Source of the DNA: Zygnema circumcarinatum SAG 698-1b
Lineage: Eukaryota; Plantae; Zygnematophyceae
Assembly (NCBI GenBank): GCA_037447605.1
Contig: CM074819.1
Coordinates: 2,221,580-2,285,579 of the forward strand
DNA length: 64,000 bases
Direction: 5' to 3'
Positions 7,696-39,000 of the stretch are shown in pieces. Position 1 is the first letter of the stretch. Every line of letters starts with the position of its first letter. Made by a program: the position numbers and the translations under genes. The notes beneath the pieces were generated by a model. That model did not search any database. It saw only the letters and a program-made list of their open reading frames with translations, and was not told where the DNA came from.

Positions 7696-8256
7696 GGTTC
7701 AGAACATCCATGACAAAAGAGAATTTTGAAAATAAAAAATCGTTTTATCCAAGCGATGTTTTGAGGTACCTACTTTCGAATGATGGGTGCCTGATATCGA
7801 TGGTTTTGGATGCTGACTTCAAGCTGAAGCCACCAAATTTACATCCACATTTATTTTGTATTCTGTGCTGCCCTCCACTCTATTGTGAAGTAAACTAAAC
7901 ATGACAAATTGTAGCAAACCCTAAATCCCTAAATAATTTATAAACCTTAAACCCTCAAAGCCGCTGCCTACAGAAAATCGCCATTATTGCCTAAGCATCC
8001 TGAGAGACCTGCGCCTTTGGCACTTGCACTAATAGTTAACTAATCTTAGCTGACTTTGGTCAGCTTGATCTAAGCAACCGGTCGACTCGTAATTACAGTG
8101 AAATGTGTGAATGTAAACTTATTGAAATGGAGAGCTCAGCCTTAATAAGTTTCATGCGTATGAAATGCGAATTCTGCACTGGTTTCCCCTCAAATCAGTA
8201 GCAAACCGGAAGCAAAAGTTACGCTTTCATAAGAATGGAAGCGGAAATACCACTGC

Positions 8257-17483: not shown

Positions 17484-19697
17484 TCATTCCTTCACTTTAG
17501 GCTGAAAGCAGCACATAAATCCAGACTTCTTCTTCCCCGATCTCTTCACAGGTCGTGACTGGGGCAAAAAAGACGAAGATTTCAAAACTAGTGCGTTGAT
17601 CTTTTTTGGATATTCAGGCACCACTTTTGATTGACTGAACGTTTCCTGCATCTCCAACTCGAACTTAGCAGCAGGGTCCGGCTCAGGAGATGCTGCTGCA
17701 CTATGTATCTTTGACAGGGAGTGAATCACAGGGGGGTGGTCAGGAGAAGCAGGTCTGCTTAGACGGAGTGAAGAAGGAGGTCTCCGTTCTGGAGAGGTCG
17801 CCCTACTGTTTGCCCTACTATGTCTCCTTGAAGAAGCAGCTGATGGTGAACCTGGAGGTTTTGGTAGAGGTAAGAGGAGGAGATGCTTATTGCGAACTGA
17901 AGATGGTGTGGAGGGCGATTGGGGCGGCCTTGATTCTGGTGAAGTTGCTCTGCTCTGTCTTGCTGAACCCATTCGGAAATGGGGTTCAGGGGACCCCGGC
18001 CGACTTCTCCGTTCAATTGTAAGCATAAGGGAAGATTGAGGGGGGGCTAAAACGGGGACAACCAAAATATCTGGATGAGGAGATGGGGGTGCTCGCCTTG
18101 GTGAAAATGGTATCCGAGGAGGGTATGAATTAGTCCGCTGTGAGCTTGCTATGCTCCTTATACTGTTGATGCTGACATGGCTTTCTAAGCTAAGTTCTCG
18201 AGTAAGAATCCGAGCTGGAAAATTGTTGTTGTTAGTAGAGGGCGGTTCTGGGACGCCTTCGAAGGCATCTTGAAAATAATCAATAAGTTCAGGATCAGGC
18301 TGCTCACCATCCTCCTCCTCCTCCTCCTCGTTTTGCTGAGCTTCGGCTAAGTCCATGGCTTCCTGGATTCTTGCATTCTGCAAACATTCCGCCATTTCTT
18401 CCTGCTTCAAGAGATCAAAGTAATCGAGCAGCTGCTCAGATAGCTTATCTACCTTAAACTTCCCAAATGCCTCTAGTAAAAAAGACGCCCCTGGGACGTC
18501 CAGTTTGTACAATTCCTTCACAACACGCTCTACCTCCTCCGGTCTGTCCAAAATGAAGTCCTCGAAGGGACTCTCCATAAACTCCTTTGCTTCCAAAGAT
18601 GCCTTATGATTGAACACCTCCAGAACCTGTACTTGAAAGTCTTTTGCATGATCGTCCAACTCGTCGTTCTCTAACATCTCTTTCACTTCTTTCCACTCTT
18701 CCTTCCACTTTTGAAGCTCATCATCAAGACCCACAAGTTCCTTAAAGAGCTGAGCTGCCAGTTTGCCATCCCGCTTCACTGAATCGGTTTCACTGCCCCC
18801 CTTCTGCCCTTTAGCAGTCCACGCAAGCTTCATAATAGCAGCAGTTTTGCTCGTCGCATTGTCGCCTTCACTACCCTCATCACCACCACTTTGTGGCGCC
18901 TCTTCTGCATCTGGGTCTTTTTGAAAAAGAGGCTCCGAAATATCCCCTATTTGGTGCTTTCGTGATTTTTTTTTCCTGATTTTTTTCTCATCACTTTCAT
19001 CTCCCTCCTCGTCATCTTCTCCATCGTCGTCACCATCCTCGCTCCCACTCTCGTCGTCGCTTTCTTCGTCTTCGTCTTCATCCTCATCTTCACTGTCATC
19101 GTCCTCTTCACTGTCATCGTCATCTGAATCTCCCTTAGTTTTGGAAGATTTCTTCTTCCTCCCATGTCCAGACTCCTCCTCTGACTCTTCCTCTTCCTCC
19201 TCCTCCTCGGACCCTTCTTCATCCTCTTCCTCGCTATTTTCGTCCTCTTCGTCCTCCTCTTCCGACGAATCTTCAACAGGTCCAATGCCGTCTAAATCTC
19301 CGACATCAAGCAGACCAAAATAGTCTACCAAAACATCCAGAATATTTCCCGTTACTTGCTTCGTGCACCCTTCTGACAACATACCAGCCCCTGGAATTTT
19401 CTTCCTAGCAAAAATGATTAAAATTTCCTCCAAATCATTCTCAATTCCAACTGCTAAATCCTCATCCGGGGAAAGCATAAATTTCTTCAAATGTCCAGAC
19501 GCCCTTTTGTATAACCGAACAACAGTTTCCTGATATGAGAGTCTCTCCTGCTTCAGCTGATTACTCAAACCCTCCTTTCCCCACGCCCATCTCTTCTTGA
19601 ATTCCTCCAAACTTTCGTCCAAACCGATCAAGTTTTTCAAGAAGGATGTAGCGACGCTTGCTGCTGAAGCAATAACATCATTTGGGTCCTTCGACAT
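17484..19697 (-). CDS. 737-aa intronless protein: two copies of an unrecognised ~115-aa helical domain, acidic tracts, RxxSP-rich region, C-terminal di-Cys motif
   Basis: Uninterrupted 2214-nt ORF with non-repetitive globular segments. A CAG acceptor lies just before the ATG, so there is a 5' UTR intron or a further upstream exon. It ends KKKSGFMCCFQPKVKE. Confidence 0.85.
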   Translation of the reverse strand: MSKDPNDVIASAASVATSFLKNLIGLDESLEEFKKRWAWGKEGLSNQLKQERLSYQETVVRLYKRASGHLKKFMLSPDEDLAVGIENDLEEILIIFARKKIPGAGMLSEGCTKQVTGNILDVLVDYFGLLDVGDLDGIGPVEDSSEEEDEEDENSEEEDEEGSEEEEEEEESEEESGHGRKKKSSKTKGDSDDDDSEEDDDSEDEDEDEDEESDDESGSEDGDDDGEDDEEGDESDEKKIRKKKSRKHQIGDISEPLFQKDPDAEEAPQSGGDEGSEGDNATSKTAAIMKLAWTAKGQKGGSETDSVKRDGKLAAQLFKELVGLDDELQKWKEEWKEVKEMLENDELDDHAKDFQVQVLEVFNHKASLEAKEFMESPFEDFILDRPEEVERVVKELYKLDVPGASFLLEAFGKFKVDKLSEQLLDYFDLLKQEEMAECLQNARIQEAMDLAEAQQNEEEEEEDGEQPDPELIDYFQDAFEGVPEPPSTNNNNFPARILTRELSLESHVSINSIRSIASSQRTNSYPPRIPFSPRRAPPSPHPDILVVPVLAPPQSSLMLTIERRSRPGSPEPHFRMGSARQSRATSPESRPPQSPSTPSSVRNKHLLLLPLPKPPGSPSAASSRRHSRANSRATSPERRPPSSLRLSRPASPDHPPVIHSLSKIHSAAASPEPDPAAKFELEMQETFSQSKVVPEYPKKINALVLKSSSFLPQSRPVKRSGKKKSGFMCCFQPKVKE

Positions 19698-20082
19698 CCT
19701 GCGTGCAGTTTGGAACGCCTAAGGGTTGGGGAAAAAGCTGCTTAAGTTTTTTTTTTGGGAGAATGCTGTCTGCTACCAGTCCCGCTGCATTGGGCCGGAG
19801 AGAGAGAAATAAGTTACTCCATGGGACGCGCGATACAATCGTTTGAGGAAGTGAACAAGCAAGAAAGGGGGGNNNNNNNNNNGGAGAGGGAGGGAGGGGA
19901 GGGGAGGGGAGGGAGGGGAGGAAAGAGAATGAGAAAGGAAAAGTGACAGAACAAAAACGAGAAAGAGAAATAAAAAGAGAAATAAAGAGAGAGTGTGAGA
20001 GAGACCGAGCGAGAGAGAGAGAGTGTGCGAGTGAGAGAGAGAGAGTGTGCGAGTGAGAGAGAGAGAGAGTGTGTATGTGTGC

Positions 20083-20132
<50 letters not shown>

Positions 20133-20210
20133 TGTCTGATAATGCCTGTTGACGATGGGAGTGCAGGACTAGAGGCGGCCCGGCCCCGCCGGGACAAACT
20201 TTTCCGAGCC

Positions 20211-20257
20211 GTACCGTACGGTTGTACGGCCCACTACATCCGTATAGCATGCCGTAC
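20211..20257. promoter_or_regulatory. Cluster of 4 GTAC cores (SBP/SPL-type sites), including CCGTACAA
   Basis: GTAC at 20211, 20216, 20224 and 20254, upstream of the 737-aa gene. Function is inferred only. Confidence 0.35.
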
Positions 20258-21089
20258 AAAAGTGCCAGGGACGTCAATTATGACGTCATCAAATGACTCA
20301 AAAGTTAGTCCGGAACGCAGTGGGGACTGTAGGTTGACGTCAGCCTGGCGTACGCGAATGGCCTTGGTTTATGGAAAATGAAAATAAAAACCTAAAAACT
20401 TGAGTCATGGTTTTAGCTACTCATCGGCTGCCACGTGGCGTGAGGCGGCTCTCTGATTGGTCGGTTGACCGGCGGTGGCCTTCGGGGCAACGCTGACGGT
20501 TGCTTTCGGTCGCTGTCGGTCGTGACAAATGGTGTCAGGCGACGCTAGGTTTGCTGTTATGACGTCACCCAAAAATCCTCACGTCACCCAAAAGGCATAA
20601 ATTTGTTTATTTTTACTTAGGGCCTATTTACATATTTTTTTGGCTAGATTCCCACCTTTATTCGCGGGTCAGATTTTACTTTAGGGTTTGTAGGGTTTCT
20701 AGAATTTTTGGTTTTTGCTTATTTATTTTATTTTGGATTTTTTGGTGGATAAAAATTTCAGTTTTTTGGCCGCGGCCAAAACTCTCCCACTGGTCACCGC
20801 GATTCGGGCTCCAGATCTGTCGCTTTCTGGCGCCGCTTTTGGCTTCATCTTCAAATTTGTCTGCTTGCGGTCCCCTAGCCGACAAAGCGGTCGCTCCGGC
20901 CCATGCACGGCAGCTCACCAGCGACAAATCCTGACCGGAGGTCGGTGGCTGATCGACGGCCGGATACGTGCCACGTGGCCAGTCGGCGATTCTGCTTCTA
21001 CGGACGGACGGTCACGCTCGGTTGACCGTTGGCGGTGCGCGCCACACGTGCGAACTCCTGTTTATGGGTTACTGTACAGTAAACCGTGT

Positions 21090-21205
21090 TTGGGGTTTTA
21101 GCGTTTGAGGGTTTCTAAGGTTTTGGGTTTTAGGGTCTTTAGGGTTTCTAAGGATTTAGGGTTTTAGCATTTTTTAGGGTCTCTAAGGTTTAGGATTTTA
21201 GGGTT
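21090..21205. repeat. Degenerate (T)nAGGG telomere-like array
   Basis: ttttaggg/tttaggg/tttctaagg units. Similar arrays at 26518-26548, 36590-36662, 43205-43340 and 50090-50160. Confidence 0.75.
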
Positions 21206-21691
21206 GGTAAACAAAAACTGTCACATTTCAATGGCAGCATTTGCTGCTTGCCCGGCCCTGCCCTGTTCCACATAACATTATGGCAATGCAAGCTCATGTG
21301 AGAGATCGGGTGGAAATTGCAGCTTTTACCAGAAGGAAGAAGAAACATGGAGCGGCAAAGTGCGAGCGTTGCAGCATCAGATGGCAACGACGGCATCCGT
21401 GTAAAAAATGTGCTGACTTCTTCTATAAACAAGCTTTTACATTTGCATCTCCCAACCCAACATCTCGACAACTTGCTCAGAAACAAACTCAGTTGACTGC
21501 AGATTTTAGCCTGCCTGCCTATCTGCCTGCTTTCCTGCCTGCCTCACTCCCTCTGTGCTTGCTTCCCTGCCTCCCTGCTTCTCTCTTTGCTTGCTTTCTT
21601 GCCTGCCTGCCTGCCATTGGAAGCTTTGCGTTGTGCCTTAGGCTTGGGCTTGGCCTTGTACTAGGCCCTCCCTGTATGGAGTCACGGCTGC

Positions 21692-24600
21692 TCAGTCCTT
21701 GACGGCGACGATGTCGACCATGACCGGCTGCCCCAAAGCAGTCCTCAGCGCCTTAGAGAGGTGCTTGGAGTGGTCGTCCTTTCGGAACACATCCACAAAC
21801 TTTGCCGCCGTTCCTATGCGCACGAAATAGCCCTCCCCGGTAGAGCTGACTGACAGGAGGGAGCCCTATAAATGGAGAGGAGACAGCAGGAGGAGGGCAC
21901 GCCGAGGTCAGGAATGCGCATGAAATCGTACAACCACTCTTCACCAGTTGGGTCTTAGTCTCTGCCAAAACCAACAGGCACAATCTCCTCCTCTCATCAT
22001 AGAAATAGTGAAGCTTTAAGAGGAGTTATAGAGAGAGTTCCATTCATACCTTCTGGCGAGTAAGAGCTTGAGTCGTTCGGCTCTCCAACATAGCACATGT
22101 TTCCTCCCAGATGTCCTTCAACTGCTCCTCTTTCCTGTCATTCTCTGAAGGGGGCAGCCCAGACTCGCCGGCGTTGCAGCCGCCATCACCACCCCCTTCC
22201 CTCCCACTCGAATTTCCGCTTCCCAAGCTTGGTAAGCCACTTTCCAGCTCCCCCCTGGCAAGATCTGCCATCCTTTCTTGGACCCACTTCGGAAGCGAGG
22301 CTATGTCCTCGGAGCTGAGAATCTCCCTAGTATGCGAACGCTTTCCTAACTTCAATTCATAGTCGAGCTCGGAGACCCAATCTGACGTGAGTTCTTGTGG
22401 CCCAAAGTGGCAATAAATCATATTTGCCCAGTTTTTGGAGTCAGATACAAGGTGGTGTAAAAGGGGAGAACGGGAGGCTGCCAACGTAAGGGGACGATTC
22501 AAACTGACAATGTAATCAAGAGTCGCGGAAAGAGCTGCCTTCGTTTGAAGTCCCTCGGGCACCTCAAGGTCGTCTAGAAGCACCAATGACCTCCCAGTAG
22601 CGTCCTTTGCTATGTCTGATAACTGCTGCAACTGTTCTTTGAAAGAGATTCCGCTAGAAAAAGGTTTGCCAGAGGTCTTCGGACTCACCATGATGGAGTC
22701 TGCAATACCCACTGATGCCCAATAAGCAGGGACGAAGGACCCCATTTGCGCCATCACTTGAATTTGGCCGATTTGGGAAAGGTAACAGGTTTTTCCGCTA
22801 TGACGAGGTCCCACTAGAAGCAGCGTACTTGACAACGGCCATTTTCTTCTTTCATCTTCGACTTTCCTGACAACCTTCCTCTCCGCTTCTGCTTCTCCTG
22901 CTGCCTCCACTCGCTCCGTTGGGGCTATGCTGCAACTACCGCTCTCCACTCTCTCCTCTCCCTGCAAAACTTCCTCCTCCGTTTTTGAATCAATCTTCGT
23001 GTCACTCTTAGGCTTCTTCAAGACCTCGACTCCGGGCAACCGTTCGTCATTACTCCGAGTACTTAGAAAAATTGAGTTGTGGACAAAAGGTTGACCTTCT
23101 GGCAGCGCTGCCTCGACAGATGGATGCCATCCAAGGAACACAGAAAGGCTGTAATCTTCCGTTATACGGGGCCGCACGTACCCTCTCTCTGCTGCTACTT
23201 CTGCTTCGTTTCACAACCCACGCGAAGAGAAATGAGCCGTTTCACTTACACTTCCATTACACTTCGGAGAATCATCGGAGTTCTTATGAATGAGTTCTAA
23301 TGGACATTGGAGATCCTTGGAACCTTGAATACTTCAAGAATTCCAGTAATTGACAGGGTGAAATATACTGTCGGAAAAGCCTTCGGAAGAGTGGCTCCTA
23401 ACACATAGAAACCTTTCCAACATCTAGAAGCTTTTAAAAGACAAGAGAAAAACATACGGAACTTTGGGAACTGCAGAAACTGCAAAAAACTTGCCAACCT
23501 TCGAAATTAGACAAACTTAAAACAACCCAAAACCAAAAGTCGGTTTCAGGATTGCAGGCTTACCTGCAAAACTTGCCAGTACGTCTATCTCTGCCAGAGC
23601 CTCTCCCATCTCCCAGAGCAGCTCCACCTTCTCTCCCAAAACCACTTTAAGCTTCAGTGCAGCATCTGTGGCTTTGAAATTTCCACTCCCATTTAGTTCT
23701 TCCACTTGTCTATGGTAGCCATAAGTGTCCGACTCATTCGCTCGAAATCCTTCACTCTTCTGCACATGCCAAGAAAGAATGTATTGGGATTCTACACTCT
23801 TCTTAACTATGCAGAAACATCAAATGCATTCGACAGGCTCGTCCTCCCCCTCCCGGTAGATGACGATTGTTCGGGGTACAGTACAAAAGTTCTATGGCTT
23901 CGCAATTTTGAATATTCTACCGTTTGAGCCTATTCATGGTTACGAGGTCCCCTTTCCTAGAAGAATAACAATTACCAGCTGCCCTTCAAGAAGCGACGAT
24001 AGTAGTATGCTTTTGGAGAGAAGTCCTTCTGGCAAAATTCCTTTTTGTGCGGCCTCCAGTAATACTCCCGAGCCTTCAGAATGGCCCGACCCTCTTCCGA
24101 CTACAGTCGCCACACTGCTTGCGAGGGCAATAAGCTCTCTGTACCCTCCTCTGAATGAATGATCAGGACTGAGAAACGTGGAGGGAAGTGGGAGAGAATT
24201 GAGAGGAGGTCGTGGAGGGCGAAGAGAATGAAAAGAACGAGAAAGAGAGAAGGGGGAGTGAGGGGGAAAAGGAGGAGGAAGAAAGGAGAGGAGGAATTGG
24301 GAGGAGAAACGGGTAGGAGAAAATTGGGAAAGAGGAGAGCAGGGGAGACGGAGGAATTCCAGGAAAGAGCAGGGAGCAGACGATGAGAGGGGAATGAAGA
24401 CGAGGTAGTTTTCAGCAATTCACATTCTTAACTTATATTCAACGGTCTACAATGTAAACCTATGTGACGGGCGCACTGCAACCTACCCAGCATCCGCCAT
24501 ATTCCAAGCGAGCCGAGAGGTGAGCTTCTGTATGTCTGCCAAGCGGCTGAGCTGCTCTCTGATCGATTCACGCAGACTGTGGGCAACGGTCAGAGCCTGC

Positions 24601-27600
24601 AATAGAGGTAGCAGCTCAGTAAATTTTGTCAAAACAAGGTCATTCGGGGTTTTAAGATTGAAGGAGACGATGTTTGATGTTTTCAGCTCACAATGATCTG
24701 CAATGTTATCAGCGAAGGCATGGAGGGTGGGATCGGGGATGAATCGGGTCACGAATGGCGCTAGGTACAGCTAAAGCTAGAATTGAAACAAACTCAAGTT
24801 CTGAAACCAAACGTAGATTTCAAAACTGAAATCGAGCAAGAGAATTTTCGAGTGTAGCATTTAGCATTTGCGACCCTGTTGTTGCCCTTTCTTAGATCCA
24901 TTTTTTCACAGATTTACAATTTTAGAATTTTGACTTCCGGACTCTTAAGCTTCTGACGGAGCTCCTTTGTACTACGGCACTGATCTGACGAGAGGAGAGG
25001 CGAAAGGCGACCTCTACTGCATCATGGCGGCGCAGCAAAGTCTGCATATCGCAGGAGGGTTGGAGCAGCCATTGCCGCAGTTTGCGCGTTCCCATTGTGG
25101 TCATTGTGCGGTTCAAAGCGGTCTGCAGGCTGGAGGATGGGCCGCGAGGAAACTCCACCAACTGCCATAAAGGAAGAAGGGGTATAAAGCAAGATGGGAT
25201 TGGAGGATGGTAGAGGTTTTTTTCGTTTCAGGAGTTGGGGTTTAATAATTGTAATTGTTTTGGGGTACGAAAAAGAAGGGTCGATAGGAGAGCTTACGGT
25301 CGCTTTATGCAGTTCTGTAAATCCACACTTTCAGATTGACAGTATTTGTGGTTTTTTGTACGACTGACGGGTGGAATGCTCCTCGGAACAACCTATAGGC
25401 CACAATAAAATAATAATACTAATACGGGTTCAATAACTTTTGTAGCAGGACGCATACCTCAAGGAAGGACACAGTGTCAGGGTTCAACTGAAGGGCAGAC
25501 TTCGCGTCATAAAACCGCGGTCGTTGTAGAAGGGCTCGACTTGATGCTTGCACATTCTTATCTTGAACATAACTGCATAGGAGGGAGACAGAAAGGGTAA
25601 GAGCGAGAGAGTGAGAGAAGAGAGAGAAGGAAGAAAAGGAACAATAGGGAAGGGGCGGGACTGGGAGGGAGGGAGGGAGGGAGGGAGGGAGGGAGGGAGG
25701 GGGGGAGGGAGGAAGAGACAGGGGAAAAAGGTATATCTTAACATGGCAAGTGCAGTGGAAACCTGGAAAGCCTGGACTCAGTGAGCAAATACTCAAAAAC
25801 CCCAAAACGGTGATGCCCCAAACTTCCACCCCCCTCCATGGAAGCAGAAAGAAACGCACACCAAGAGGGTGGCGGCTCCTCTCGCAGAGAGATGTCCTCC
25901 CTTTGGACCTCCCCAGAAAGGTTGCTGCGTGTCCGCCGGAGACCCCTGCTCCATAGAGCAGCTAATCACCCATTCAGGAGACCGGTAATGAAAAAGGAAA
26001 AGGCTAGTGAAAAAGGCACATGGCCTATATAAGGTTCGGAAGTTCATAGTTTTTTAAGCTTCGAGATTCTCCTTAATGGTAGAGGCCCACATGCGCCTCT
26101 CGAATCTTCATGATTAGGTATCATCAGGCATCCATGAACACCGACGCAAAGTTCAGTTATTTCTCTCGTAAGGATGACTTTAAGGTAGAAAGCGTGTTTT
26201 TTAGAGCTTTCGAGACTTTCTTACTTGAAATTTATTGGGTTTTTGAAGTTTTGACCGTACCTCAGAAACAAGTGAAACTCTGCGTTGGACATCGTTTTGC
26301 TGATTTATACTCCTCCACAAAGAAACAGCTTCAGTAGTTGCCATTTCCTGCACATTGAACCAATGTGCAGAGCTTCCCGTCACCACTAGACAGTGCCTTT
26401 CTCTCCCCTTGTGGGTGTTTCATTAGTAAGGTGAACACTCAGGAATATCCCACTTTCATATAACTAAGATTAGTATGGGGCTCTCGAATAGTGCTATTTA
26501 GGCTAATAGAGTCGTCCAAAAACCCTAAAAACCCTAAAAACCCTAAAATGTACCTGAGAGACTAGTAACAGCTCCGCCGGATTCAGTCGAAGAATCTCAT
26601 CGCGCAAGGCCTCCTCCCCCTCCACTTCAGTCGCCCAAAACTCACCTGCTCCACCATGCAAATATCGTTCCCAAGCCATTCACTCATTCCACTCATTACT
26701 GTCTCATCCAAATTCACTGAATTCATTCCCTCCCACCGCCCCCCCCTCTCTCTCTCGCTCTCACTCTCCACCCCACACCCCGCCCTACACCACCCCGGCG
26801 ATCAAGTCAAGGCTCTCGATCTCGCCAATCCCCTTCTCATCTCTCTTTCCTGCCTCCTCCTCCGTCGTCTCCTTCTGCATCTCCCTCTCTCTGCTCTTCT
26901 CTTCCCCAATCTCGCCCGCGACTACATCCTTTCTCCTCTCCTTTGCACCTCTCCTCCCAGAGTCCGGCCTATCCCAACATCTCTCACAATCATCCGCGTT
27001 GATCCGCCAGAGGGCCAAATACTGAAGGAGCTGATCTCAGTGGGCAAGAAAAAAAAGTTAAATCTTCTAAAATCGTGAAGCAAAGATAAGTATTTTTCTT
27101 AGAAAATATACGGTTTCGCTAGTTCAGTGCTACTCTGCCTCTTTCTGGATGCCGCCTCTGAACCACTCACCTGTTGACACGTCAGCATAGGCGAGTCCGT
27201 ACTTGTCGCAGCCCTCTTCTGACTTCACAATACTGACCAAGAAGTTGTTTGACCCTGAAGGCAACGTTATGGGGTCCAGCGTGGTGCCAGGTGTCAGCAC
27301 GCTAGTGGCCTGCCATCTTGACTCTCCATGACCAGTCCCTACATCCATCTGCAAGTCACAACGAAGGATAGGGTCAACTACAGAAGGGACACTTGTCAGC
27401 CTTAGCCCCAAACTAGCTTTGACAAAATAAGATGAAAATAGAGAAAATAGAAAAGAAAAAAAGGAAAAGGATTTAAAACCCTCGGGTTACGCTAGTTACT
27501 TCTTTAAAGAGGCCAATTGAAAACCCTTGCCCCAACAGGAAGGGAATTGACCGCTCGATTTCGCTGCAGGGAGCCGCTGCTATAGGAGCCACCTTGGCTG

Positions 27601-30600
27601 CCTGAAGGGATAGCCATGGCGAAGATGAATGGTAAAAAACAGGCCATGTAGACCAGGGCCACATTCGAACCCAGAAACCCGCAAAGCATGAAAACAAGGG
27701 AAAAAAAAGGGACTCTACGCGCAACCGACTTACCTCCCCACCAATTCTTCTTGTGAACTGCTCTGCACTTATCCCGGTTGCTAGAACGTCTGCGTCCTCA
27801 AAGTATGCCTGCAGGGAAAGAGAACTTTGCATGTGTGACAGACTATTCACAAACAGTAACATTCTTCATTTCTTAGAGTTTTGATGTGCCAGATTCACAA
27901 AACAGCAAACGTAAGGCGATGAGAATTCTACCTTAGTTTAGGCCTGAGAATATGTACCTCGTAGGAGTCCCCATTCTGAAAAAGCAGCAGGTAGTCCGGC
28001 CGCTCCTTTTTCGCAGTTAGCCATGCCCTGAACTCTGGTCTGAGGCCAACTGCCTCCTCCTCCACATATGCGCTATCTGCCATCTCCTCCAACTCTCTCG
28101 CTCCGCTCTCATCTTCACGTCCCACTTCTTCGCTTGCTCTCTCCCCCACAGTCCGAGCAGCGGGAGATACGGCCGCTTCTCTTCTTCTCCTGCCTGCTTC
28201 TACGCTTACCTGCTCGGTTGCCAGAGGATTCCATCCCCTGTCTGCTGCATCCTCATCAAACATCCATTTTTCAACATCATTTGACTCGTCCCGTCTGGGC
28301 AATTCATCTTGACTGGAAAATGCTTCCCTTAGATCTCTTCCAGTTAAGGTATCCTTCACATTGAAAACCGGGAAACCAGTCTCTCCATAATGAAGGCCAA
28401 GTGAGCCTTCGATAGCGTCGTCTGCAACCTTTCCTCCTCGTGACGAACCATTTACCGTTTCCTTATTGGCTAGCTCATTTTCTTCACTGAGAACGAAACC
28501 TCTAGTTGTACCCTCAATTGCCCCTGCATGCCTTCCCCTACCCGCAGATTCTTCCGCTTCTCGGGTTTCTTGCAGGTCTTGGAAAAGAGGCATTTCAAAT
28601 CGCTTCGTTCTTTGGGCATCTCTCGCTAATTCTTGGTGGCTCGGAGGCCTCTTCTTCGATTCGGGATTCCCATCAGCACCAAATGTGTAGCGACATAACG
28701 ACTCTAAAGGAAGCTTCGAATTTTCCAGCCAGAAGTTTATAACGTCAAGCAGCATAAGGACATCCGGGCCTGCTCGATGCGCAGCCGGACGAGACGGAAG
28801 GCCATAGTGGCTATGTAGAGTGGCGAGCTTGAGGTTCTTTGGACCTGCCAAATGAGCTGCAGCACAGGGAATACATAGATATGGTTCACAGCCACGCTGA
28901 CTGTCTTAACGTATCTTGCTCAAAGGAGAATCTTAAAATCCTACAGGAAATGACAATTTATTAACACGATGTCCGAACTGTTGTGGGTTCACGACCAGGG
29001 GGCTTGAGGAAGGAAAAGAGCTATGAATGTGAATTGGGAAGAAACGCAAAGGATAGAGGAGGGAGAGGAAAGGGGAAGAAAGAAAGAAAAGATAAGCACC
29101 TAGAGACTTCGGATGCAGTACCCTGCCCAGCACAAGCGTATCCAAGAACAGCCAATTGGAGGGCATGATGATCTTGTAGCGTTCAAACTCGCGTTTCAAA
29201 ACCGGGACATCAAACGTTTGTCCGTTGTGCGCAGCCAATACAATTGGAACATCGCTCTGTCGTCGGCTTTCCACAAAGTCTATGAAGGCCCGCCCCACCA
29301 CCGCCCAGCTGACACCCAAATCGACGGTCAAGCGTCTCCAATAGAGGTGCGGAAAGCCTTTCAAACAGAAAGGAAACAACACAAGGCCTGGCATAGTGGG
29401 ACAGCATATAAAAGCTTTCGTATTCGACTCTGATCCTAGTTTTCATGACGTCGGGTGCGTATTTTACAAGTTTATTGTACCTCAGGTCATGCATTTATAT
29501 GCCTAATGCTTCAAGAAGACAAGGATGATAAGTCGTTGAGGGGTTCAACAACAATTCAAGAAGATCCTATGTAGGTAACTCCATATTGTCTCCCTAGTGG
29601 ACTTCAATCAAATTGGATGTTCATTGTCACTAAACAGCATGCATTGCCACAGAAAGGTTGCGAATCCGTTAGTACTTATACTTCCTCCCCTTTCTACTAT
29701 TCCCATAGTGCACACAACCTCCCCAACCCCATACCAGCCAATACACCCTCACCCTCACGCTCAACGTGCAGTTTTCGCGCGGCTTGTGTCTCCAGCACAT
29801 GGGCTGCTACATGAACTCACGAAGTGGCCCTTGTCGCGTACAGACGAAACCACTCATGGCAGTTTGGCGTGTCTTCTCATGAAGCATATGCTGACCTTTT
29901 TTAATGCAATCACGGCTTCTGCACTGCATTCATGCGCATAGCACTCACTCGGGAACGTCGGGCCGACAGACATCGTTGGTGTAGATATTGTTCGATCTTG
30001 ACGCCCCGAGAGGAACAGGCACTCTCGGATTAACAAGCGACTCCATGCTGCTGAACGGCCCCCCCGTTCTATCTCTTGCCGCCACCTCGATAATGCGGTC
30101 GCTCGAGCCGAGTCCCGTGGTTTCCAAATCAAACCCTATCAACACCAATGGGGGCTTGTCTCCACCTGTCAACGATTCAACTCCGGAGTGCAGTGAAGCA
30201 TTCAAGCCTGACTTCCAATGTTTCCCCCTTCCTGCATGGCCATAGGCATGGGGTATTCGGTCATCTGAAATTCGCCAGGATGGCGGAGCTGCCAGTTGGC
30301 TACATCGCCATTCCCGCCGTTGACTTCTCAAATGCTCCGAAATCGATAAGTTCGGCGTTCCAAAAATCATTTTTTTTTCAGGTTCTCTGACGCAATGTTG
30401 AAAATAGGAGGCGTTGTTTGTGGAAATTGTGGGAGAATATGGATAGAATGTCGGCATGAGAGAAGTGGTGGGCAAGGCAGGAGAGTAAGCTGAGAGCAGC
30501 AACCGCCTATCAACTGTTGTCATTTGGCTATATCTTTGTACCCTCCGCATTTTATTCAACTTCAGCGTATACCTGCTCTTCGAAGCGCAATACAAACTCC

Positions 30601-30790
30601 AAATCCCAATACTAGAGCACGCCGTGGAATATACATGAGGCATTTGCAGGGGCAAGACACCACCCCTTTTGACAAGCTTCTTCTGACTGGAGAGAGTAGA
30701 ATTCCGTAGCACAGCAGGTGCTGTGCCACAGTGACATCCATGGCGTCCATACGAGGCCAACATACCCTCCCTTCCCCCACAATTCCACAT
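21692..30790 (-). CDS. Fusion of a DPD1-like DEDDh 3'-5' exonuclease, a bacterial-type MutS (domains I, II, III, V; degenerate) and a DnaX/STICHEL-like C-terminal domain; probably organelle-targeted
   Basis: Exons: start (ATG 30790 or 30550) to 29949 (ExoI FDLETTG); 29308-29100 (ExoII AHNGQTFD, NWLFLDTL); 28844-27958 (ExoIII HRAGPD plus MutS-I KKERPDYLLLFQNGDSYE); 27808-27734; 27601-27500; 27348-about 27171 (VLTPGT...YGLAYADVSTG); 1-3 unresolved exons at 27.1-25.9 kb; 25572-25458; 25161-25012 (LNRTMTTMGTRKLRQWLLQP); 24596-24487; 24138-23976; 23759-23564 (LAEIDVLASFA); 23188-22050 (GPRHSGKT, MAQMGSFVPA, LVLLDD); 21865-21692. All resolved junctions are GT-AG and phase-consistent. Confidence 0.88.
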
Positions 30791-31093
30791 AAGCAATGTG
30801 ATGCGGAGCCAGCCTGCAGCAGCTCATGCCTCCTGCAAGCGCCTCTGCAGGGCCCTGCAGGAGATGGCCGCGTTCCCCCCCGAGGGACAAGGCTGAGCAG
30901 GTGTCGGTGCCGTACGGCACTACCACTTACGCCGGTTTCAGTTCCACAAACTCAGTTTTTGACGTGTGAACTTTCCTTGTTGTCAACGGTAGACGCACAT
31001 ACAAACCAGGATGGAGGAAGGCGCACATACAAACCAGGCTGGAGGTTTTTCTTTTTGTAGGGTTTTAAGAAAGGTTTTTTGAAAATTAGGGTC

Positions 31094-31211
31094 AATTTAG
31101 ACACCTTTTGGATAGATACACACCTTTGTGCGCACATCAGATTTCATTTCAGGGTTTTTGAAGTTTTGCATTGTTTAAAGGTGTGTATCTAGCCAAAAAG
31201 GTGTGTAAATT
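31094..31211. mobile_element. Short inverted-repeat element (MITE-like hairpin) with ~34-bp arms
   Basis: 31094-31127 aatttagacaccttttggatagatacacaccttt is near-complementary to 31177-31211. A related arm-like sequence lies at 20626-20659. Confidence 0.55.
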
Positions 31212-31451
31212 ACAAATTTCTTTTGGAAGTAGAGAATTGCGGAATTTTAATAAAATTTGATAAATGCTGTATAAATTTTCTACAACCACATACCAAAACT
31301 GTACGGCGCACATAACAAAGTGCGCTGGTTAGTAGCGCAGGGCTGACGTGCGATTTCTGAACCCAGAACCTCTCGTGCTCAATCTCCGCCGTCCCTTGTC
31401 GCTCGTGCGGCAATCGACGCCGTTGCTTACACGTGCGGCGGCCGACCCTGC

Positions 31452-31719
31452 TGGGCCCCCCTACATTGGCGCGGCGGAGCCCTGCGCGGCCCTCTTTCTC
31501 GCCGCCGCGATTAGGGTTCGCCCTCGCCCTCCCTCCCCCCTTCCCCGCCTCCTCCAGGAGGGCGGCCGCCATGGTGTCCGGGTCGGGAGTCCAGGCCAAG
31601 GTGGTGGTCGTGGACGCGCGCCACCATATGCTGGGCCGGCTGTCGTCCATCATCGCCAAGGAGCTTCTTAATGGCCAGAGAGTGGTGAGCATGCGTCCTC
31701 AGCGTTTTTAGGGTTAGGG
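31452..31719. promoter_or_regulatory. Site II (TGGGCC) and telo-box motifs around the RPL13A start
   Basis: TGGGCC at 31452, ATTAGGGTT at 31510-31518 and TTTTAGGGTTAGGG in intron 1 (about 31706-31719). This motif pair is established for plant ribosomal-protein promoters. Confidence 0.55.
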
Positions 31720-34235
31720 ATTGATGTTTTTTTTTCGCCTCTCTTCTCCTCCCTTCTCTTCCCTTCGCTTCTCTGTCGCTCTCCGCCGCTAGTTTTCCTC
31801 TCGTCGTACCTCTCATCTTTTTTTGTACAACTGCACAATTGTCGGTTTCTCGTGTCCATTGCCTGGCCTACTTCCTTTCCCTCCTTCCCCTGCCTTTGCC
31901 TCTCTTTTTCGTTGTTTTACCCCTATTTCAGCTCTGGCTGTCCTCTCCTCTCCCTGTCTTCCGCATTGCCCGCCCCTATCTCGCCCTCCTCCCCGTCCTC
32001 TCCTTCACCTGTCTTTCTCCTCCCCTTTTCTCTCCGTTCTCCTTCTCCCATTTTTCTCTACTGCCTCCGTTACTCCCTCTCCCTCTCCGTCCTCTCTTCT
32101 GTCCCTTCCCGGTAGAGCGCAATTTTCTCTCACGCATTCCTCACCTCCTTGGAAGGCATGCGTGCTCCGTGCGTATGAATTCCTTCCAGGTGGTTGTTCG
32201 ATGTGAGGAAATCTGCCTATCAGGAGGATTGGTTCGCCAAAAGATGAAGTACCTCCGATTCTTGCGAAAGCGCATGAACACAAAGCCTAGCAAGGGGCCC
32301 ATTCACTTTCGGGCACCCTCCAGAATATTGTGGAGGACTATCCGTGGGTGAGTTTGACTTCTCACGCTTCATTAATTTGTGAGGTGGAAGCTTGGCTTTT
32401 GAACAGTTCAGCAGAGTTCATTTCCTGCTGTAATTGGATAGGGATAGTATGCCTTTGGATGTTTTGTTTCCATGCACTCAGAGTCGCCTTTTTGTGGGGA
32501 TAGAAGCTTGGCCCCAATCAAGGAAGTTGTACGTATAAGTTGTGGAACGAAAGTTCTCTCAGCGCGGGGTTTATCTTATTTCGGGCTACATTTAGCTTCC
32601 GCATAACCTATTTTTGGATACGTGACTTTAGAAGCTAAACTGCTCATTTTGTAATACATACTCTATATATTTTGAAAATGTCTAGACAAAAACACTTTTT
32701 CAGATGAAAGATTCCTGGTAGAAAATGAGTCGGATATGCAACTCATTTCGCGGGTTATCAGATGGTTATCAGAGACGTTGTCGGTTCTTGTGTTTCTCCA
32801 TGCTCTCCCTCTCCCAATTCACCTTGTGGTCATTCCCTCACTCTCACATGCTCCCTTCCCCTTCTCCTTCTCGCACCTCGTCCACTTCCCCCCCGCTTCT
32901 CTCTTCCTCTTTATCTTCTCTTCGCCACTTGCCACCTTACTCCCACGTTTGCTCCTCGTTCCCTCCTACCTTCTCCCTAAAACCACCCTCCCTTCCTACA
33001 ACCTTCCTCCCTCCCTCCCTCCCTCCCTCCCTCCCTCCCTTCCTCCCTTCCTCCCTCCCTCCCTCCCTCCCTTCCTCCCTCCCTCCCTTCCTCCCTCCCT
33101 CCCTCCCGTCCTCCCTCCCGTCCTCCCTCTCTTTCTCACTCCCTCCCCTCCCTCCCTGTAGAAAGTAGTGGAGAAGCTCAGTTGCTGAGGGGATGGAAGT
33201 GCAGAATGATTCCCCACAAGACCAAGAGAGGCGCAGCTGCATTGGAGCGTTTGAAGGCCTTTGAGGGAATTCCCGCCCCGTACGACAAAACAAAGCGTGT
33301 TGTCGTCCCTGATGCTCTCAAGTAAGTGAAGAATGCACTGCCGATCCTAATTCTCACCTGTATTGTGTTTAACTTATTTTTTCTGGTTTATTAAATGATA
33401 CCTTGAACAACAAACTCCAGTCCTCACAAGTAGGGGCACTACATGGAATTGCTATGAGTTGATCTGTGTGTTCGGATTGGTTTGGGATTAGGGTTTTGCG
33501 CCTTCAACCCGGCCACAAATACTGTTTGTTGGGTCGCCTTTCGCACGAAGTGGGTTGGCATCACCTGGAGACCATTAATGTAAGTAACTTTTCCGGATTC
33601 CAAAGAATTAGCTTATCGGAAAATAGTTAGGCTTATGATGGGAAGGACAAGGTTCTAAGTTAATACGTGATATGGACTATGTGAGCACAAAACCGGACAA
33701 CATCCAAGTAGGTTTAGAAGGCTTTCGGTTACCCGCATCCATGGACAGAGAGTTCATGAACACAGTAATCAAGTAATTACGCTTTCATACCTCTACATGA
33801 ATAACCTCACACAGCGATTGCAGCATCCATTGACTGATGCAGTGATAAGGTCAGGGATTAACCAAAGAGATGCGATGATCATTCTCTGCAGCTATAGGCG
33901 CTCGGGCTTTTGATTCGTCAAAGTTGTTTTGCAGGTTGTCGTGTATGAGCTACTCATAATGGGCTGTTGTCTCTTCCCCTCCGTCGTTCGTTTCCTCCCC
34001 GCTCGTCTCCCGTCTCTCTTCTTGAGATCACTGATGATCACTGATGGGGCCTGTGGATATGTTACGATGGGTGCAGGAGCTGGAGGCGAAGCGGAAGGAA
34101 CTGTCGGCCGAGTTCTACAAGAAGAAGAAGGCGGCTTTGCAGAGGCGACTCAAGGCAACAGTGGCTGCCACCGAGAAGCTGGCGGAGGAGCACAAGGCCG
34201 TGCTGGAGCCGTTGTCCTACAAGGCGTCGGAGTAG
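31571..34235 (+). CDS. RPL13A: 60S ribosomal protein L13a (uL13)
   Basis: Exons 31571-31684, 32190-32347, 33205-33321, 33492-33579 and 34077-34235 (636 nt, 211 aa). Sequence [24 protein letters not shown]...[27 protein letters not shown]...[17 protein letters not shown]. Confidence 0.98.
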
Positions 34236-35145
34236 AGCACTAGGCGCTGCAAGAGCGAAAGCTTTCTATCTTGCCACTGTGCGGAAGCCTGTTTTGGAGC
34301 AGAATTGAAGGGAGTCGTCATTGAAAGAGAAGCTCTGTCCTTCTTTTCCAATCGAACGGAGATTGCCTATCGTGTGCAGCTGTGAGGCTTGTCTGTGGGG
34401 AAGTGTGTGCAGACCATGCATATGCGGTACCCTAAAGGCTATGCGGCCACTCAGCTTTGGGTGAGTGTGCATGGGATCGGTGGGCACCAGTCTTGTGGTG
34501 ATTCACTTCCTGAGGGGGGCATCGTAGGTGATTGAATGATAAGTCCAACACTGTGGCCACACGAATGTACATGTCGCGCCTCTCTTGTTCAATCTCGTGA
34601 GGGTATGGAACTGAGTTGTCGTTTTGAGTTACGTCAGCTGGAAATATCCAGCATGGAAACGACAGGCTGTTTAACTGGTATATAGCATAGAGCGCCGTTG
34701 CCCTTAGCGGTACGACACTGTCATGTCACAATACAGTCTTGAAACCGCGATACGATATGTCCAGAGCGGTACGATATATCGCGTGAACCATGTCCGCCGG
34801 AAATATAGCCAAGTCTACCGCGCCCCCGCACTATAGAAGTCCAGAGCCGAGTATCGATATGATACGGAAATATCGCGATACTCGGTTTGACGTGCGCCAA
34901 ACGGGGGCGGTTTCTGCAGCGCGTATCGTATCGTATCGTATTGCGGCGAAAGGCGAATTCCAGTAAATGTGGGTTTGTTGTTGTCGCGCCAGGCCATGGA
35001 TGGATGGATGGATGGATGGATGGTTCGCGCTCTGGCTGTTGGTGTTGTTGTTGGTAAGAAGCTAGAGAGAGCGAGGCGTGGCCGTTCCTTAGCGAAGGAA
35101 GGAAGGTCTGCCAAGTCTGACCTCCCCTATTGTTGTATTATGTAG

Positions 35146-35349
35146 TAGGGGGGGTCAGACATTTACCATGGCCTTACTAAATTCCCGAATTTAGTATACT
35201 AAAAGTCAAAGTTTTGCGTACGAATTCCGGGTCGGGATCCGCGGCTCCACCGTACCCAGCCACACCGAAATGCGTACCTAGCCAATGCTTAGTTCGCCCG
35301 ACAGGCTTACTAAATTGATTTGGCCATGGCGAATGTCTGACCCGCCCTA
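35146..35349. mobile_element. MITE-like element, 204 bp, with 28-bp terminal inverted repeats
   Basis: Left TIR 35146-35173 tagggggggtcagacatttaccatggcc; right TIR 35322-35349 ggccatggcgaatgtctgacccgcccta (25/28 complementary). No coding capacity. Confidence 0.6.
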
Positions 35350-37122
35350 TTGTTGTACTATGTATTGTATTGTATTCAAAGCGCTGCGTTTGATTGTTGA
35401 TGGGCGGTTCGACAACTGGTCGGTCGCCCAACGGAAGAAATGAAGAATTCGAAGAAGAAGAAGAAGACGAAGCCCGTCACTTTGAAATCATCAATCCTGC
35501 TACCTAGAGTGACACCTACCAATAACACTGTCGCGTAGCGGAACTGAAAGGAGAAGAGCGAAACGTGGCATCGTTACGGCGCGCCATGTGGACCTAAAAG
35601 CTACCACGTGTCATAAAGTGGTCCCAGGAGGGCAGGGATGGCGAAAGCTGATTGGCCAATCTCAGGGCTTCTTTAATGACATTTTGTCGTTAGCGAAAGC
35701 GCGCTTGGAGTGTATCTGGACTGTCCGGACCGACAAACATAGTTGATAGCTTTATAGAATACGTAATATGTATATATTTTTTCATATAATTAACGTCGTG
35801 TGCATAGTACGGGTTCTTGAAAAAACTCATTGCCGTCCCTCGTTTTGACAAGGATAAGGGCACCTCGCGAGACATTTGGCGGAGGCCGAGGACGTTAAAC
35901 ATCGTCAGATCAGAAAATTCGACGGCGGGCAGCGGGCAGACGGGCAGCGACCGAAATATTTGCAGCGGGTAGCCAGCGGTGAACGCATCGAAGCCGTCCG
36001 TCAAGCGATGCGGAGCGTCCGTACAGCAATGTTTGGCGCTTGGGAACATTTTGAGCTGCCCGAACTTGGCGGACGAAACGAAACGGCTCAAAAGCTGCGC
36101 ACGTTTTGATAATCTTTCGTTAGCAGGGCAAAGGAGTGTACTTCAACAAAAAGATTCAGAGTGGTCCTTGGAAGGATGGAACTCGAAAGTTTGAGGCGAG
36201 GATATGGATCTCGTTTTTATGCTTCGAAGGCGGAAATGTATGGCGGTGTACGAATCGGAGACAGAAATTGGACTGAAGGAAGGATTGAAGAATTGAAGGA
36301 CTGTATCTTGCTTTTTAGGTTATGCGTTGGTTGACTTTTCTTCTTCTGGGAGGTGTTCAGAGTTGCAGCAATGGCTGAAGGTTTGTTGGTGCAACTTTGA
36401 ATGGAATGCTGCTGATGTTAGATCCTGTGGTCCGTGTTTGACATTTGGTCTAAAAAAAAAAAAAAAATGGAAGTGGAGGCCTTAGAAAGAGAGAGGAGGA
36501 AAGATCTGTTGATAATGAAACAGTATTGGTAGAGGGATTATTTTTTAGGCTGTAAGGTGTAGGCTCTAGAGTTTAGAATGCACGGTGTTGGGTTTCAGGT
36601 CTAGGGTGTTAAGGTTTAGGATCAGGGGTTTAGGTTTTAGGGTTTATGGTTTGGGATTTAGGAGAAAGCTGCATGCATGCAGTGGCTCTCATGGCTTGAG
36701 CACATGATGATGGCCATGGCTCACTCATGTCATCGTCATATTGAGGAGCAAAGCAAACTTATAGGGTTTGAGGGTTGTGTGCATCAAAATGCTCAGGTTG
36801 AAAGTGAACTTTGGAAGAGGACTATTTAGAATGGAAGGTCCTCACAATGTGGGGTCCTAGGACCTGCAAGGCGAGGAACAAAACAACAAAAAATGGCTCC
36901 TTGCCTTGAGGCTCATGAAAGGCCAATCCAGAGCCGTACAAACTCATCTTAGCAAACTAGAATCCGGTTTTTGTCCGTATAGTTTTTTTCGTACAGTACT
37001 TTGTAATTCGTGACGCGTGTGATGGCGTCATACAGTGTATCGCGAACCTGCTTGCACTATCAGCTGGCGTCACCTTACAGTTCTATGTAAAGTCACGCAA
37101 GCCCATGTAGTCGCTGTAATTT

Positions 37123-37422
37123 CCACGTGGTTTTTCACCCCTTTGTTCATGAACCCCAGCACTTGCCCACGCCGGAGGGCTCCCTCCCTTTTGCAGCAGC
37201 AGCCAACTGAGTCCCTATGTGAAGTCGAACACGGTATTTTCCAAATATTTTTGACCACCGTCAAACGAATCCACAAACTGTTACAGCGACATAGAGCACG
37301 TAGTTGTAATCGCCCTCCACGTGGCCCTTGAAACGTGGCACCTCCACCGACCAAATCTGCGACGTGGCGCCTCAAGAATCGCCAACGACATTCTCCCTTG
37401 CTTTGAAATGCCGCCACGTGTC
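37123..37422. promoter_or_regulatory. Cluster of five G-box/ABRE-like motifs
   Basis: CCACGTGG 37123, CCACGTGGC 37317, ACGTGGC 37333, GACGTGGC 37361 and CCACGTGTC 37414, 200-500 bp upstream of the ATG at 37624. Confidence 0.5.
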
Positions 37423-37623
37423 GAACAGTACGGCACTCTCCCTCTCCCTCTCCTCTTCCACTTCCTCTCCCACTCCGACTCCTCCCACTCACTCCCGTTC
37501 TGTTTCCCTCTCCCGCTTCCCACCTCTCTCACATACTCTGATCGCCTCTCTCTCCGCCTCTCTCTCTCCGCCTCTCCCTCTTCACCTCTCTCAGCCTGAA
37601 CCCTAATCCCTTCCACCACAACG

Positions 37624-39000
37624 ATGACTATCTTCAAATCCGCCGACCTTCGCGCCTTCCGCCGACTCCGCGAGTTCACGAGGGAGTGGGACGTTCAGAG
37701 ACCCGAGATAGAGGCAGCCATGGCTACCGCGGCTTCATGGACCTCTGAAGGAACCGCCACCCGGACCGCCATATCGGAAGTTTATAAGAAGTCGTCCGAC
37801 GCCCAAAGAGCGTACCTTCTCGTCCCGACGCCGATCACCTCGCGAGCGCAGGAAAGGACAGTTCAGTCATTGCTGGACCTTCTGGACGAGCACGGAGTGC
37901 CAGGAGGCAGTCTCCTGGCACCCAACGTGTCTAAGTTTGGGCCCTCAGCGTCTCACAGAATTCTCACTGCATATTTCAGTACATTAAAGTTGGCGGCTAT
38001 CTCGGTTGTGAATGATATTGAAGGGGGAGGCTCCTTGAAAACACAAAGCGACCCATCAAGAGCAGGGATTTGTGATTCTAACGGTCGGTCGGAATCAAAT
38101 GAAGGGTCTTCCTATGGTGAGGAAGCAAGAGCTGTCGCAGAGGGGAACTCCGACATCAAGAAGTTGCCAGATGGAAGCTTCATCGTGCCTTCCATGGCGA
38201 TAGACTACGAGAAGCTTCAGTCTTTGGAAGCTACTGGTAGGAATGTAGGAGAGGGAGTTCCAGCGCAGTTCGTCGCCATCCCCCCGGAAGCTCCAGGGCA
38301 GCCATGGAAACTGGCCCGGCAGACAGAGAGTGAGAGAGGCGGAGAAATGGAGGGAAAGCGAGAGGATGAGGGCAATGAGAGTACTCCAAACGCTGGTGGC
38401 GTGGCAGCAACAGCCAGCGCTGAAGTTTCGGAGGGGGGAATGGCGTTAAGCTCTCCTAGATCACCTTCGGCTGTGGAGGGATTAGCCATGGCAGGGGGAG
38501 CGTTGATTGCAGGAGGGCTGGCGGCAGCGGGGGGCGGAGCGCTGATGGCGACCAGCGGAGCTGCCATTGCTGGGGGGCTTGCAGCTGCAACAATCGCCTC
38601 CGGATTTGGAGCAAAGGAGAAAGTTAGCGGAGAACCGGGTGAGGCCATTAGCAGTTCGGATGAGGTCAATAGTGATAGAAATGCGGTTCTAGAAAACGGA
38701 GACGCTTTCGACGAAGCAGGTAAGAGTATGGGAAATTTGAATGGAGGAGAGGAGGGAGTGGAGGGAGAGAAGGCCGTTGGAGGGGTGGATGGCGCGAGTG
38801 CGGGGGAAATTGGACCGGTTGTACAGGATAAGGCGGGCTGCGAGGAGGAGGGGGAAGGAAGAGGGAAGGAGAGAGACGTGGAGAAGATGGGGAAGCCGAC
38901 GGGCTCTCGAGTAGCAGATGAGAAGAATGGAGGAGGGGCAACGACGAGCCGGAGAAGGAGATGGGCATGTTGCACGAGTGTGGGTCGTGATGAGTGGTGA
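37624..39000 (+). CDS. 458-aa intronless protein: one copy of the same unrecognised helical domain, a Gly/Ala/Glu-rich linker and a C-terminal di-Cys motif
   Basis: Open 1377-nt ORF. The N-terminal ~120 aa aligns by eye with both repeats of the 737-aa protein. It ends RRRRWACCTSVGRDEW. Confidence 0.85.
   Translation: MTIFKSADLRAFRRLREFTREWDVQRPEIEAAMATAASWTSEGTATRTAISEVYKKSSDAQRAYLLVPTPITSRAQERTVQSLLDLLDEHGVPGGSLLAPNVSKFGPSASHRILTAYFSTLKLAAISVVNDIEGGGSLKTQSDPSRAGICDSNGRSESNEGSSYGEEARAVAEGNSDIKKLPDGSFIVPSMAIDYEKLQSLEATGRNVGEGVPAQFVAIPPEAPGQPWKLARQTESERGGEMEGKREDEGNESTPNAGGVAATASAEVSEGGMALSSPRSPSAVEGLAMAGGALIAGGLAAAGGGALMATSGAAIAGGLAAATIASGFGAKEKVSGEPGEAISSSDEVNSDRNAVLENGDAFDEAGKSMGNLNGGEEGVEGEKAVGGVDGASAGEIGPVVQDKAGCEEEGEGRGKERDVEKMGKPTGSRVADEKNGGGATTSRRRRWACCTSVGRDEW

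Follow-up and report, generated by a model that had tools for sequence, protein, structure and literature searches.

Two uninterrupted open reading frames (ORFs), ORF1 and ORF2, were analysed in a stretch of 64,000 nucleotides (nt) of the zygnematophyte alga Zygnema circumcarinatum SAG 698-1b, below called the window (GenBank assembly GCA_037447605.1, contig CM074819.1, positions 2,221,580–2,285,579, forward strand; position 1 is the first nt). They carry three copies of a helical domain of about 125 amino acids (aa), D1 and D2 in ORF1 and D3 in ORF2, and both end in a tail with a Cys-Cys pair (Table 1). As a whole, the data are best explained if ORF1 and ORF2 are divergent streptophyte-algal members of the DREPP (PF05558; PCaP1/MDP25) superfamily that are held at the plasma membrane by S-acylation of this tail, a reading to which a probability of about 0.7 is given; homology of D1–D3 to the DREPP core, judged from sequence comparison, is held with high confidence.

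Identification of the domain

The three copies, noticed earlier in a sequence-only reading of the same DNA, were compared in pairs (BLASTP): D1 and D2, expectation value (E) 4e-17, 30% identity over 126 aa; D1 and D3, E 6e-7; D2 and D3, E 5e-4, over 43 aa only. The three alignments are thus supported, every sequence block cited in that reading was recovered in ORF1 or ORF2, and both ORFs are present where it had placed them. When the whole window was scanned in six frames with a hidden Markov model (HMM), no fourth copy rose above noise.

The Pfam DREPP profile was matched by ORF1 residues 336–458 (25.5 bits) and by D2 alone (24.4 bits), the cut-off being 23.2 bits. The match was marginal and three further tests of homology were therefore run. 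Profile A2, made from D1, D2 and D3 only, was searched exhaustively against 1.84 billion representative proteins and gave 15 matches: nine canonical land-plant-type DREPPs (E 1e-7 to 3e-4; starts M-[SGT]-Y-W-K), five alga-type proteins and one TPR false positive; five of the nine DREPPs were confirmed by Pfam (78–183 bits), and two of the nine are named proteins of the lycophyte Diphasiastrum. Profile-to-profile alignment of D1–D3 with nine land-plant DREPPs (hhalign) reached a probability of 98.3%, with E 2.5e-14 across 99 columns; when the three copies were replaced by all eight alga-type cores, the values were 98.5% and E 2.9e-15. Finally, an HMM was built from 26 land-plant DREPPs only and scored D1 at 15.6, D2 at 34.1 and D3 at 23.6 bits; the top score among 1,600 shuffled controls was 8.2 bits.

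Pfam, exhaustive search, hhalign and plant-only HMM together identify the domain as the DREPP core, known from plant PCaP1/MDP25/MAP18. The sequence-only reading had called the domain unrecognised, which was wrong, as it maps to a described Pfam family; the profile search and profile comparison with the three copies, proposed there as checks, both link it to land-plant DREPPs. Word-based searches were blank for D2 by itself and also for residues 295–440 of ORF1, an uninformative result given the length filter and the divergence; the same type of search with the mixed alignment A3 returned further seed-plant DREPPs only, and no usable match to D3 was present in the protein atlas. A search of PDB sequences with the three-copy profile gave weak matches only, to the Dpo4 polymerase at E ~0.01; all were variants of one protein and were taken as chance.

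The structure of D2 was predicted with AlphaFold2 from a 25-row alignment (mean predicted local distance difference test (pLDDT) 86; predicted template-modelling score (pTM) 0.74) and is all-helical: a long first helix precedes six or seven shorter ones. In the model of full-length ORF2, residues 11–130 have a pLDDT of 88–98 and the helices follow in the order of D2; after residue 135 nearly all values, those of the Gly/Ala-rich stretch and the tail included, are below 50. Both predictions were built on a common alignment and do not confirm each other independently. The conserved unit is predicted to fold compactly, its seven or eight helices forming a bundle. The modelled core gave no match below E 1 in the PDB (Foldseek), and the best Z of a wide VIA-align search was 5.8, within the noise range stated for helical bundles. 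The check by AlphaFold and Foldseek proposed with the sequence-only reading thus found no solved structure resembling the core, and for this reason no solved fold can be named for it.

The lack of such a structure, the blank word-based and protein-atlas searches and the missing Pfam matches of D1 and D3 taken alone would all suit a previously unrecognised family without relation to described ones, as was first proposed. That explanation is refuted by the D2 score above the DREPP cut-off, the retrieval of plant DREPPs by the profile, the hhalign probability of 98.3% and the plant-only HMM scores, which for each copy exceed all shuffles; it is considered highly improbable.

Relatives and tree

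Alga-type relatives are the proteins of the Zygnematophyceae Mesotaenium endlicherianum (ME000048S07949, P0003; 1024 aa) and Spirogloea muscicola (SM000379S14406, P0004; 1439 aa); P0002 and P0015, both from one sequencing run (SRR9302961); and P0001, a fragment on a 581-nt metagenome contig, which may be an internal copy resembling D2 because its frame is open to the contig start. The Pfam DREPP cut-off was exceeded by P0015 (29.3 bits) and narrowly missed by the Spirogloea protein (21.4 bits); the Mesotaenium protein had no match. Like ORF1 and ORF2, the Mesotaenium and Spirogloea proteins start with a DREPP-like core, continue with a very long stretch of disorder and have two cysteines 8–11 residues from the end; they differ in their length and in having a single core each, and they carry no functional name in the sources.

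Among the relatives, ORF2 most resembles the Mesotaenium protein (N-terminal core 35% identical, E 5e-18, and a second match at the tails), and the two were paired in the maximum-likelihood tree with support of 97/91. In the same tree the land-plant DREPPs form a separate clade (99/98), apart from all alga-type sequences; D1, D2, P0001 and P0002 cluster with moderate support; and the split between ORF1 and ORF2 is older than the divergence from the Zygnematophyceae. The domain is short and the branches are long, and nothing further was read from the topology. The earlier description of an old, lineage-restricted family agrees with these data: as far as HMMER can see, the family is found in the streptophyte lineage only.

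Two side observations concern relatives. In L001:91-1869 (+) (Logan, SRR9302961), the DREPP-like core (P0002 residues 1–135) continues in frame into an F-box-like segment, and a downstream ORF of 386 aa has a weak Kelch motif (E 6e-4, below the cut-off); L001 may be a DREPP-core/F-box/Kelch fusion or two adjacent genes. P0005 and P0009 of Diphasiastrum complanatum are canonical DREPPs with a lysine-rich N-terminus in a lycophyte, which predates the origin in ferns reportedly given for the family.

C-terminal tail and proposed membrane attachment

The basic-CC motif reported earlier at both C-termini was confirmed; the very ends given there were not, as the ORFs run on for 4 and 5 residues. ORF1 ends ...GFMCCFQPKVKE (...CCFQPKVKE) and ORF2 ...RWACCTSVGRDEW (...CCTSVGRDEW). 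The stop of ORF1 is taken as the real end because the seven residues after its Cys pair match the spacing in two homologues. Counted from the C-terminus, the pair occupies positions -9/-8 in ORF1 and -10/-9 in ORF2, and it is flanked by Gly-Phe/Trp and Phe. The tails compared were: ORF1, KKKSGFMCCFQP... with GFMCCFQP; ORF2, RRRRWACC...; Mesotaenium, KRKKGFCGCGKK... with GFCGCG; Spirogloea, GRGVFSCCFRP...; and the homologue L002, last-exon ORF (7488-7970), SRGFFACCFTP....

CC or CxC is located 8–11 residues from the end in all five alga-type proteins or exons with a known end. Cysteine is otherwise rare in these proteins (2–4 per 458–1439 aa), and in the 1024-aa Mesotaenium protein the tail pair represents the only cysteines. 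The invariant part of the tail consists of Gly and an aromatic or hydrophobic residue, followed by the Cys pair; the basic cluster beside it is strong in three of the five tails (ORF1, ORF2 and Mesotaenium).

At the other end, neither ORF has Gly2 (ORF1 starts MSK, ORF2 MTI), and the Pfam match in ORF1 starts at profile position 34. In alignment A3, the positions opposite the plant segment W-K-x-K-x-x-P-K-x-K-K are neutral or acidic in both copies of ORF1, and D3 lacks the segment. N-myristoylation of Gly2 is not universal in the DREPP family. Membrane binding of plant DREPPs is located in the first 23 residues (Gly2 and K7/K11/K14/K18 in Medicago), and this segment also binds phosphatidylinositol phosphates (PIPs), microtubules and actin (10.1101/794008; PMC8457133).

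S-acylation of the Cys pair, together with the basic residues, is slightly favoured as the anchor of the tail at the plasma membrane. Tethering by S-acylated Cys-Cys, already suggested in the sequence-only reading, is plausible and somewhat strengthened, as the tail is kept in at least three other organisms and fits the role of the plant DREPPs. DREPP homologues without a lipid anchor would be cytosolic or bound to the cytoskeleton, with a Cys-Cys tail used for metal binding, redox sensing, as a partner-binding peptide or as a degradation signal. Such a role would accord with the few basic residues in two of the five tails and with the basic Ser/Pro-rich region of ORF1, which in composition is like the disordered regions of microtubule-binding proteins; S-acylation itself is putative. 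The unanchored alternative is nevertheless unlikely: hydrophobic or aromatic flanks of the Cys pair, and the basic cluster beside three tails, are the usual context of S-acylated anchors (PMC13132179), the plant relatives are plasma-membrane proteins (PMC8457133), and the tail, being conserved in proteins that have lost the N-terminal anchor, seems to have taken the anchor's place.

Two other types of attachment were tried and rejected. Prenylation: the cysteines are 8–10 residues from the end, which gives neither a CaaX nor a Rab-type terminus. Transmembrane anchor: the top 19-residue hydropathy was 1.47–1.55, located in a helix of the core or in the Gly/Ala-rich stretch that is predicted to be disordered.

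Regions outside the core

Behind D1 and D2, ORF1 contains two acidic stretches and, between the second of them and the tail, a basic Ser/Pro-rich disordered region (Table 1). In composition, and in composition only, the acidic linker is like the Glu-rich cation-binding tail of plant PCaP1; by this analogy, cation binding by the acidic region of ORF1 is inferred. Four copies of the motif SR-[PA]-x-SP-[ED] lie in the basic region (ORF1 residues 565, 582, 631 and 647), and these SR-x-x-SP-[ED] repeats are candidate sites of repeated phosphorylation or docking. The region behind the core of ORF2 is only mildly acidic. It includes a Gly/Ala-rich hydrophobic stretch, similar to stretches of the Mesotaenium homologue; it might touch the membrane in the manner of a glycine zipper, or be no more than low-complexity sequence.

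Proposed mechanism

The proteins would begin with the folded DREPP core, present twice in ORF1 and once in ORF2, with a long disordered region behind it. Low-affinity binding of Ca2+ and other cations is probable for the acidic region of ORF1, by analogy with the Glu-rich part of plant PCaP1, and the basic Ser/Pro-rich region is probably a target of phosphorylation. The C-terminal Gly-aromatic-x-Cys-Cys would stand in place of the myristoyl-Gly2 and lysine cluster of plants; both cysteines would be S-acylated and, with the basic residues, would fix the protein by its C-terminus to the inner leaflet of the plasma membrane. A long, charge-patterned, probably phospho-regulated tether that may bind cations would then be formed by the disordered region, and the DREPP core or cores at its free end would lie in the cell cortex, available to a partner. 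The membrane location, as well as any cytoskeletal role, is what we infer for these proteins.

Several points weigh against the reading of ORF1 and ORF2 as DREPP relatives anchored in this manner: identity of the copies to plant DREPPs is about 16–24% (alignment A3), and D1 and D3 individually have no Pfam match; the tails of Spirogloea and L002 have a weak basic cluster; those activities of plant DREPPs that have been mapped (binding of PIPs, calmodulin, microtubules and actin) belong to the N-terminal 23 residues, a segment without counterpart in ORF1 and ORF2; the Gly/Ala-rich stretch of ORF2 could offer an alternative membrane contact; and expression, S-acylation and location of the two products are putative.

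A more speculative proposal, considered less likely than not, is that the ancestral streptophyte DREPP resembled the present proteins and those of other Zygnematophyceae in being long, disordered and anchored C-terminally by S-acylated cysteines, and that the short DREPP/PCaP of land plants lost the tail and evolved the N-terminal lysine/myristoyl anchor. If true, the membrane anchor was switched between the ends of the protein, and the helical core is the only ancient, therefore essential, module.

Open reading frames and gene structure

Table 1. Features of ORF1, ORF2 and their flanks (positions in the window; residues numbered within the respective ORF).
Feature	Position	Strand	Residues	Description
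ORF1	17484-19697	(-)	737 aa	uninterrupted coding sequence; two DREPP-like cores, acidic and basic disordered regions, Cys-Cys tail
ORF1 C-terminal tail	17487-17597	(-)	701-737	KRSGKKK cluster and GFMCCFQP; Cys-Cys codons 17508-17513
Basic Ser/Pro-rich disordered region	17598-18257	(-)	481-700 (220 aa)	net charge +15; ten Ser/Thr-Pro sites
Second acidic stretch	18258-18404	(-)	432-480 (49 aa)	39% Asp+Glu
D2	18405-18785	(-)	305-431	DREPP-like core, copy 2
Acidic linker	18798-19304	(-)	132-300 (169 aa)	45% Asp+Glu; net charge -57
D1	19305-19679	(-)	7-131	DREPP-like core, copy 1
Assembly gap	19873-19882			176 nt upstream of the ORF1 ATG; outside the coding sequence
Pyrimidine-rich tract	19883-20128	(-)		precedes ORF1; about 70 CT dinucleotides, read as (CT)n on the coding strand
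CT-rich tract	37436-37592	(+)		CTCTCC-type repeats; upstream of ORF2
ORF2	37624-39000	(+)	458 aa	uninterrupted coding sequence; single DREPP-like core, remainder disordered, Cys-Cys tail
D3	37624-37992 (alignment); to 38019 (model)	(+)	1-123 (alignment); 1-132 (model)	DREPP-like core, copy 3
Gly/Ala-rich hydrophobic stretch	38464-38613	(+)	281-330	62% Gly+Ala, almost uncharged; Kyte-Doolittle maximum 1.55, borderline; predicted disordered
ORF2 C-terminal tail	38944-38997	(+)		RRRR-W-A-C-C; Cys-Cys codons 38968-38973

In-frame stops lie 8–9 codons upstream of both ATGs (nine codons in ORF2), and the N-termini of ORF1 and ORF2 align with those of the homologues. The assembly gap leaves the coding sequence of ORF1 untouched, since two in-frame stops separate it from the ATG; it directly adjoins a purine-rich/(AG)70 tract, the probable cause of the gap. 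Read on the coding strand, the pyrimidine-rich tract is probably the 5' untranslated region or promoter of ORF1.

Intronless coding of both genes, as reported in the earlier reading, is consistent with the data: each frame is open from the homologue-aligned N-terminus to the conserved tail motif. The homologue L002, of which the first ORF and the last-exon ORF were examined separately with the exons unjoined, is interrupted (frame changes, GT..AG-bounded gaps), and at the Spirogloea locus a coding sequence of 4.3 kb is spread over 8.5 kb. As these homologues carry introns and ORF1 and ORF2 do not, the introns may have been lost in this lineage, or the genes may have arisen by retroposition.

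The same difference in introns, and the absence of the exact ORF1 and ORF2 proteins from a collection of 15 billion proteins, might also indicate decaying retrocopies or chance open frames. Against this, the frames are open over 2.2 kb and 1.4 kb, both genes begin with the conserved domain and finish with the conserved motif, CT-rich tracts are found upstream of both, and no poly(A) remnant was seen downstream of ORF1; such an origin is most unlikely.

ORF1 and ORF2 are very diverged paralogues (core identity about 20%), 18 kb apart and pointing away from each other; this spacing and a split that predates the divergence from the Zygnematophyceae suggest an old duplication that remained linked. 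Elsewhere in the window, positions 10001–14000 show very strong strand asymmetry (GC skew up to 0.63 and AT skew 0.47 at 12–14 kb), with further assembly gaps at 12458-12467 and 14266-14275; this is probably a purine-rich repetitive coding region or a satellite.

Comparison with known systems

Vosolsobe et al. (2017, BBA Biomembranes) reportedly placed the origin of the DREPP family in ferns and found myristoylation to be neither conserved nor ancestral. DREPP/PCaP proteins have been termed "plant-specific" (PMC8457133, PMC11817996), and one published DREPP phylogeny spans gymnosperms and angiosperms only (10.1101/794008); a literature search that combined DREPP with algal or streptophyte terms yielded nothing relevant. 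ORF1, ORF2 and their zygnematophyte relatives place the DREPP core domain in streptophyte algae, and they suggest that the mode of membrane attachment was exchanged in evolution and the helical core was kept. They thus offer a natural experiment on the role of the DREPP core and on the interchangeability of lipid and electrostatic anchors.

Type-II ROP GTPases of plants are anchored to the plasma membrane by a polybasic region and C-terminal S-acylated cysteines (PMC13132179). The alga-type tail is similar in its polybasic stretch beside Gly-flanked C-terminal cysteines and in having no CaaX box; it differs in that the cysteines are adjacent or one residue apart (CGC), whereas those of the ROP tail (GC-CG box) are separated by 5–6 aliphatic residues. 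The attached protein is unrelated, and the likeness is one of mechanism only, with no shared ancestry.

With the DREPPs (PF05558: Arabidopsis PCaP1/MDP25 and PCaP2/MAP18, Medicago DREPP, tobacco and rice DREPP2), ORF1 and ORF2 share the homologous helical core (profile positions about 28–158) and its landmarks, namely the V-x-E-V-Y-K..S block, an invariant Pro and the [FV]-P-G-A motif. An acidic disordered region behind the core is likewise found in ORF1, by composition, and all are hydrophilic proteins without a transmembrane helix, the plant members being peripheral plasma-membrane proteins. In contrast to the plant proteins, ORF1 and ORF2 have neither Gly2 nor the N-terminal lysine cluster, and the plant DREPPs have no C-terminal Gly-aromatic-x-Cys-Cys tail. 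The alga-type proteins are two to seven times longer; the small single-core format of DREPP (about 200–350 aa) was not found in the window, where 737 aa go with two cores and 458 aa with one. What is new here is the architecture of N-terminal core or cores, long disordered region and Cys tail; the DREPP family was already known, and this is not a new kind of system, rather a useful side note on the evolution of a plant family that has received moderate study.

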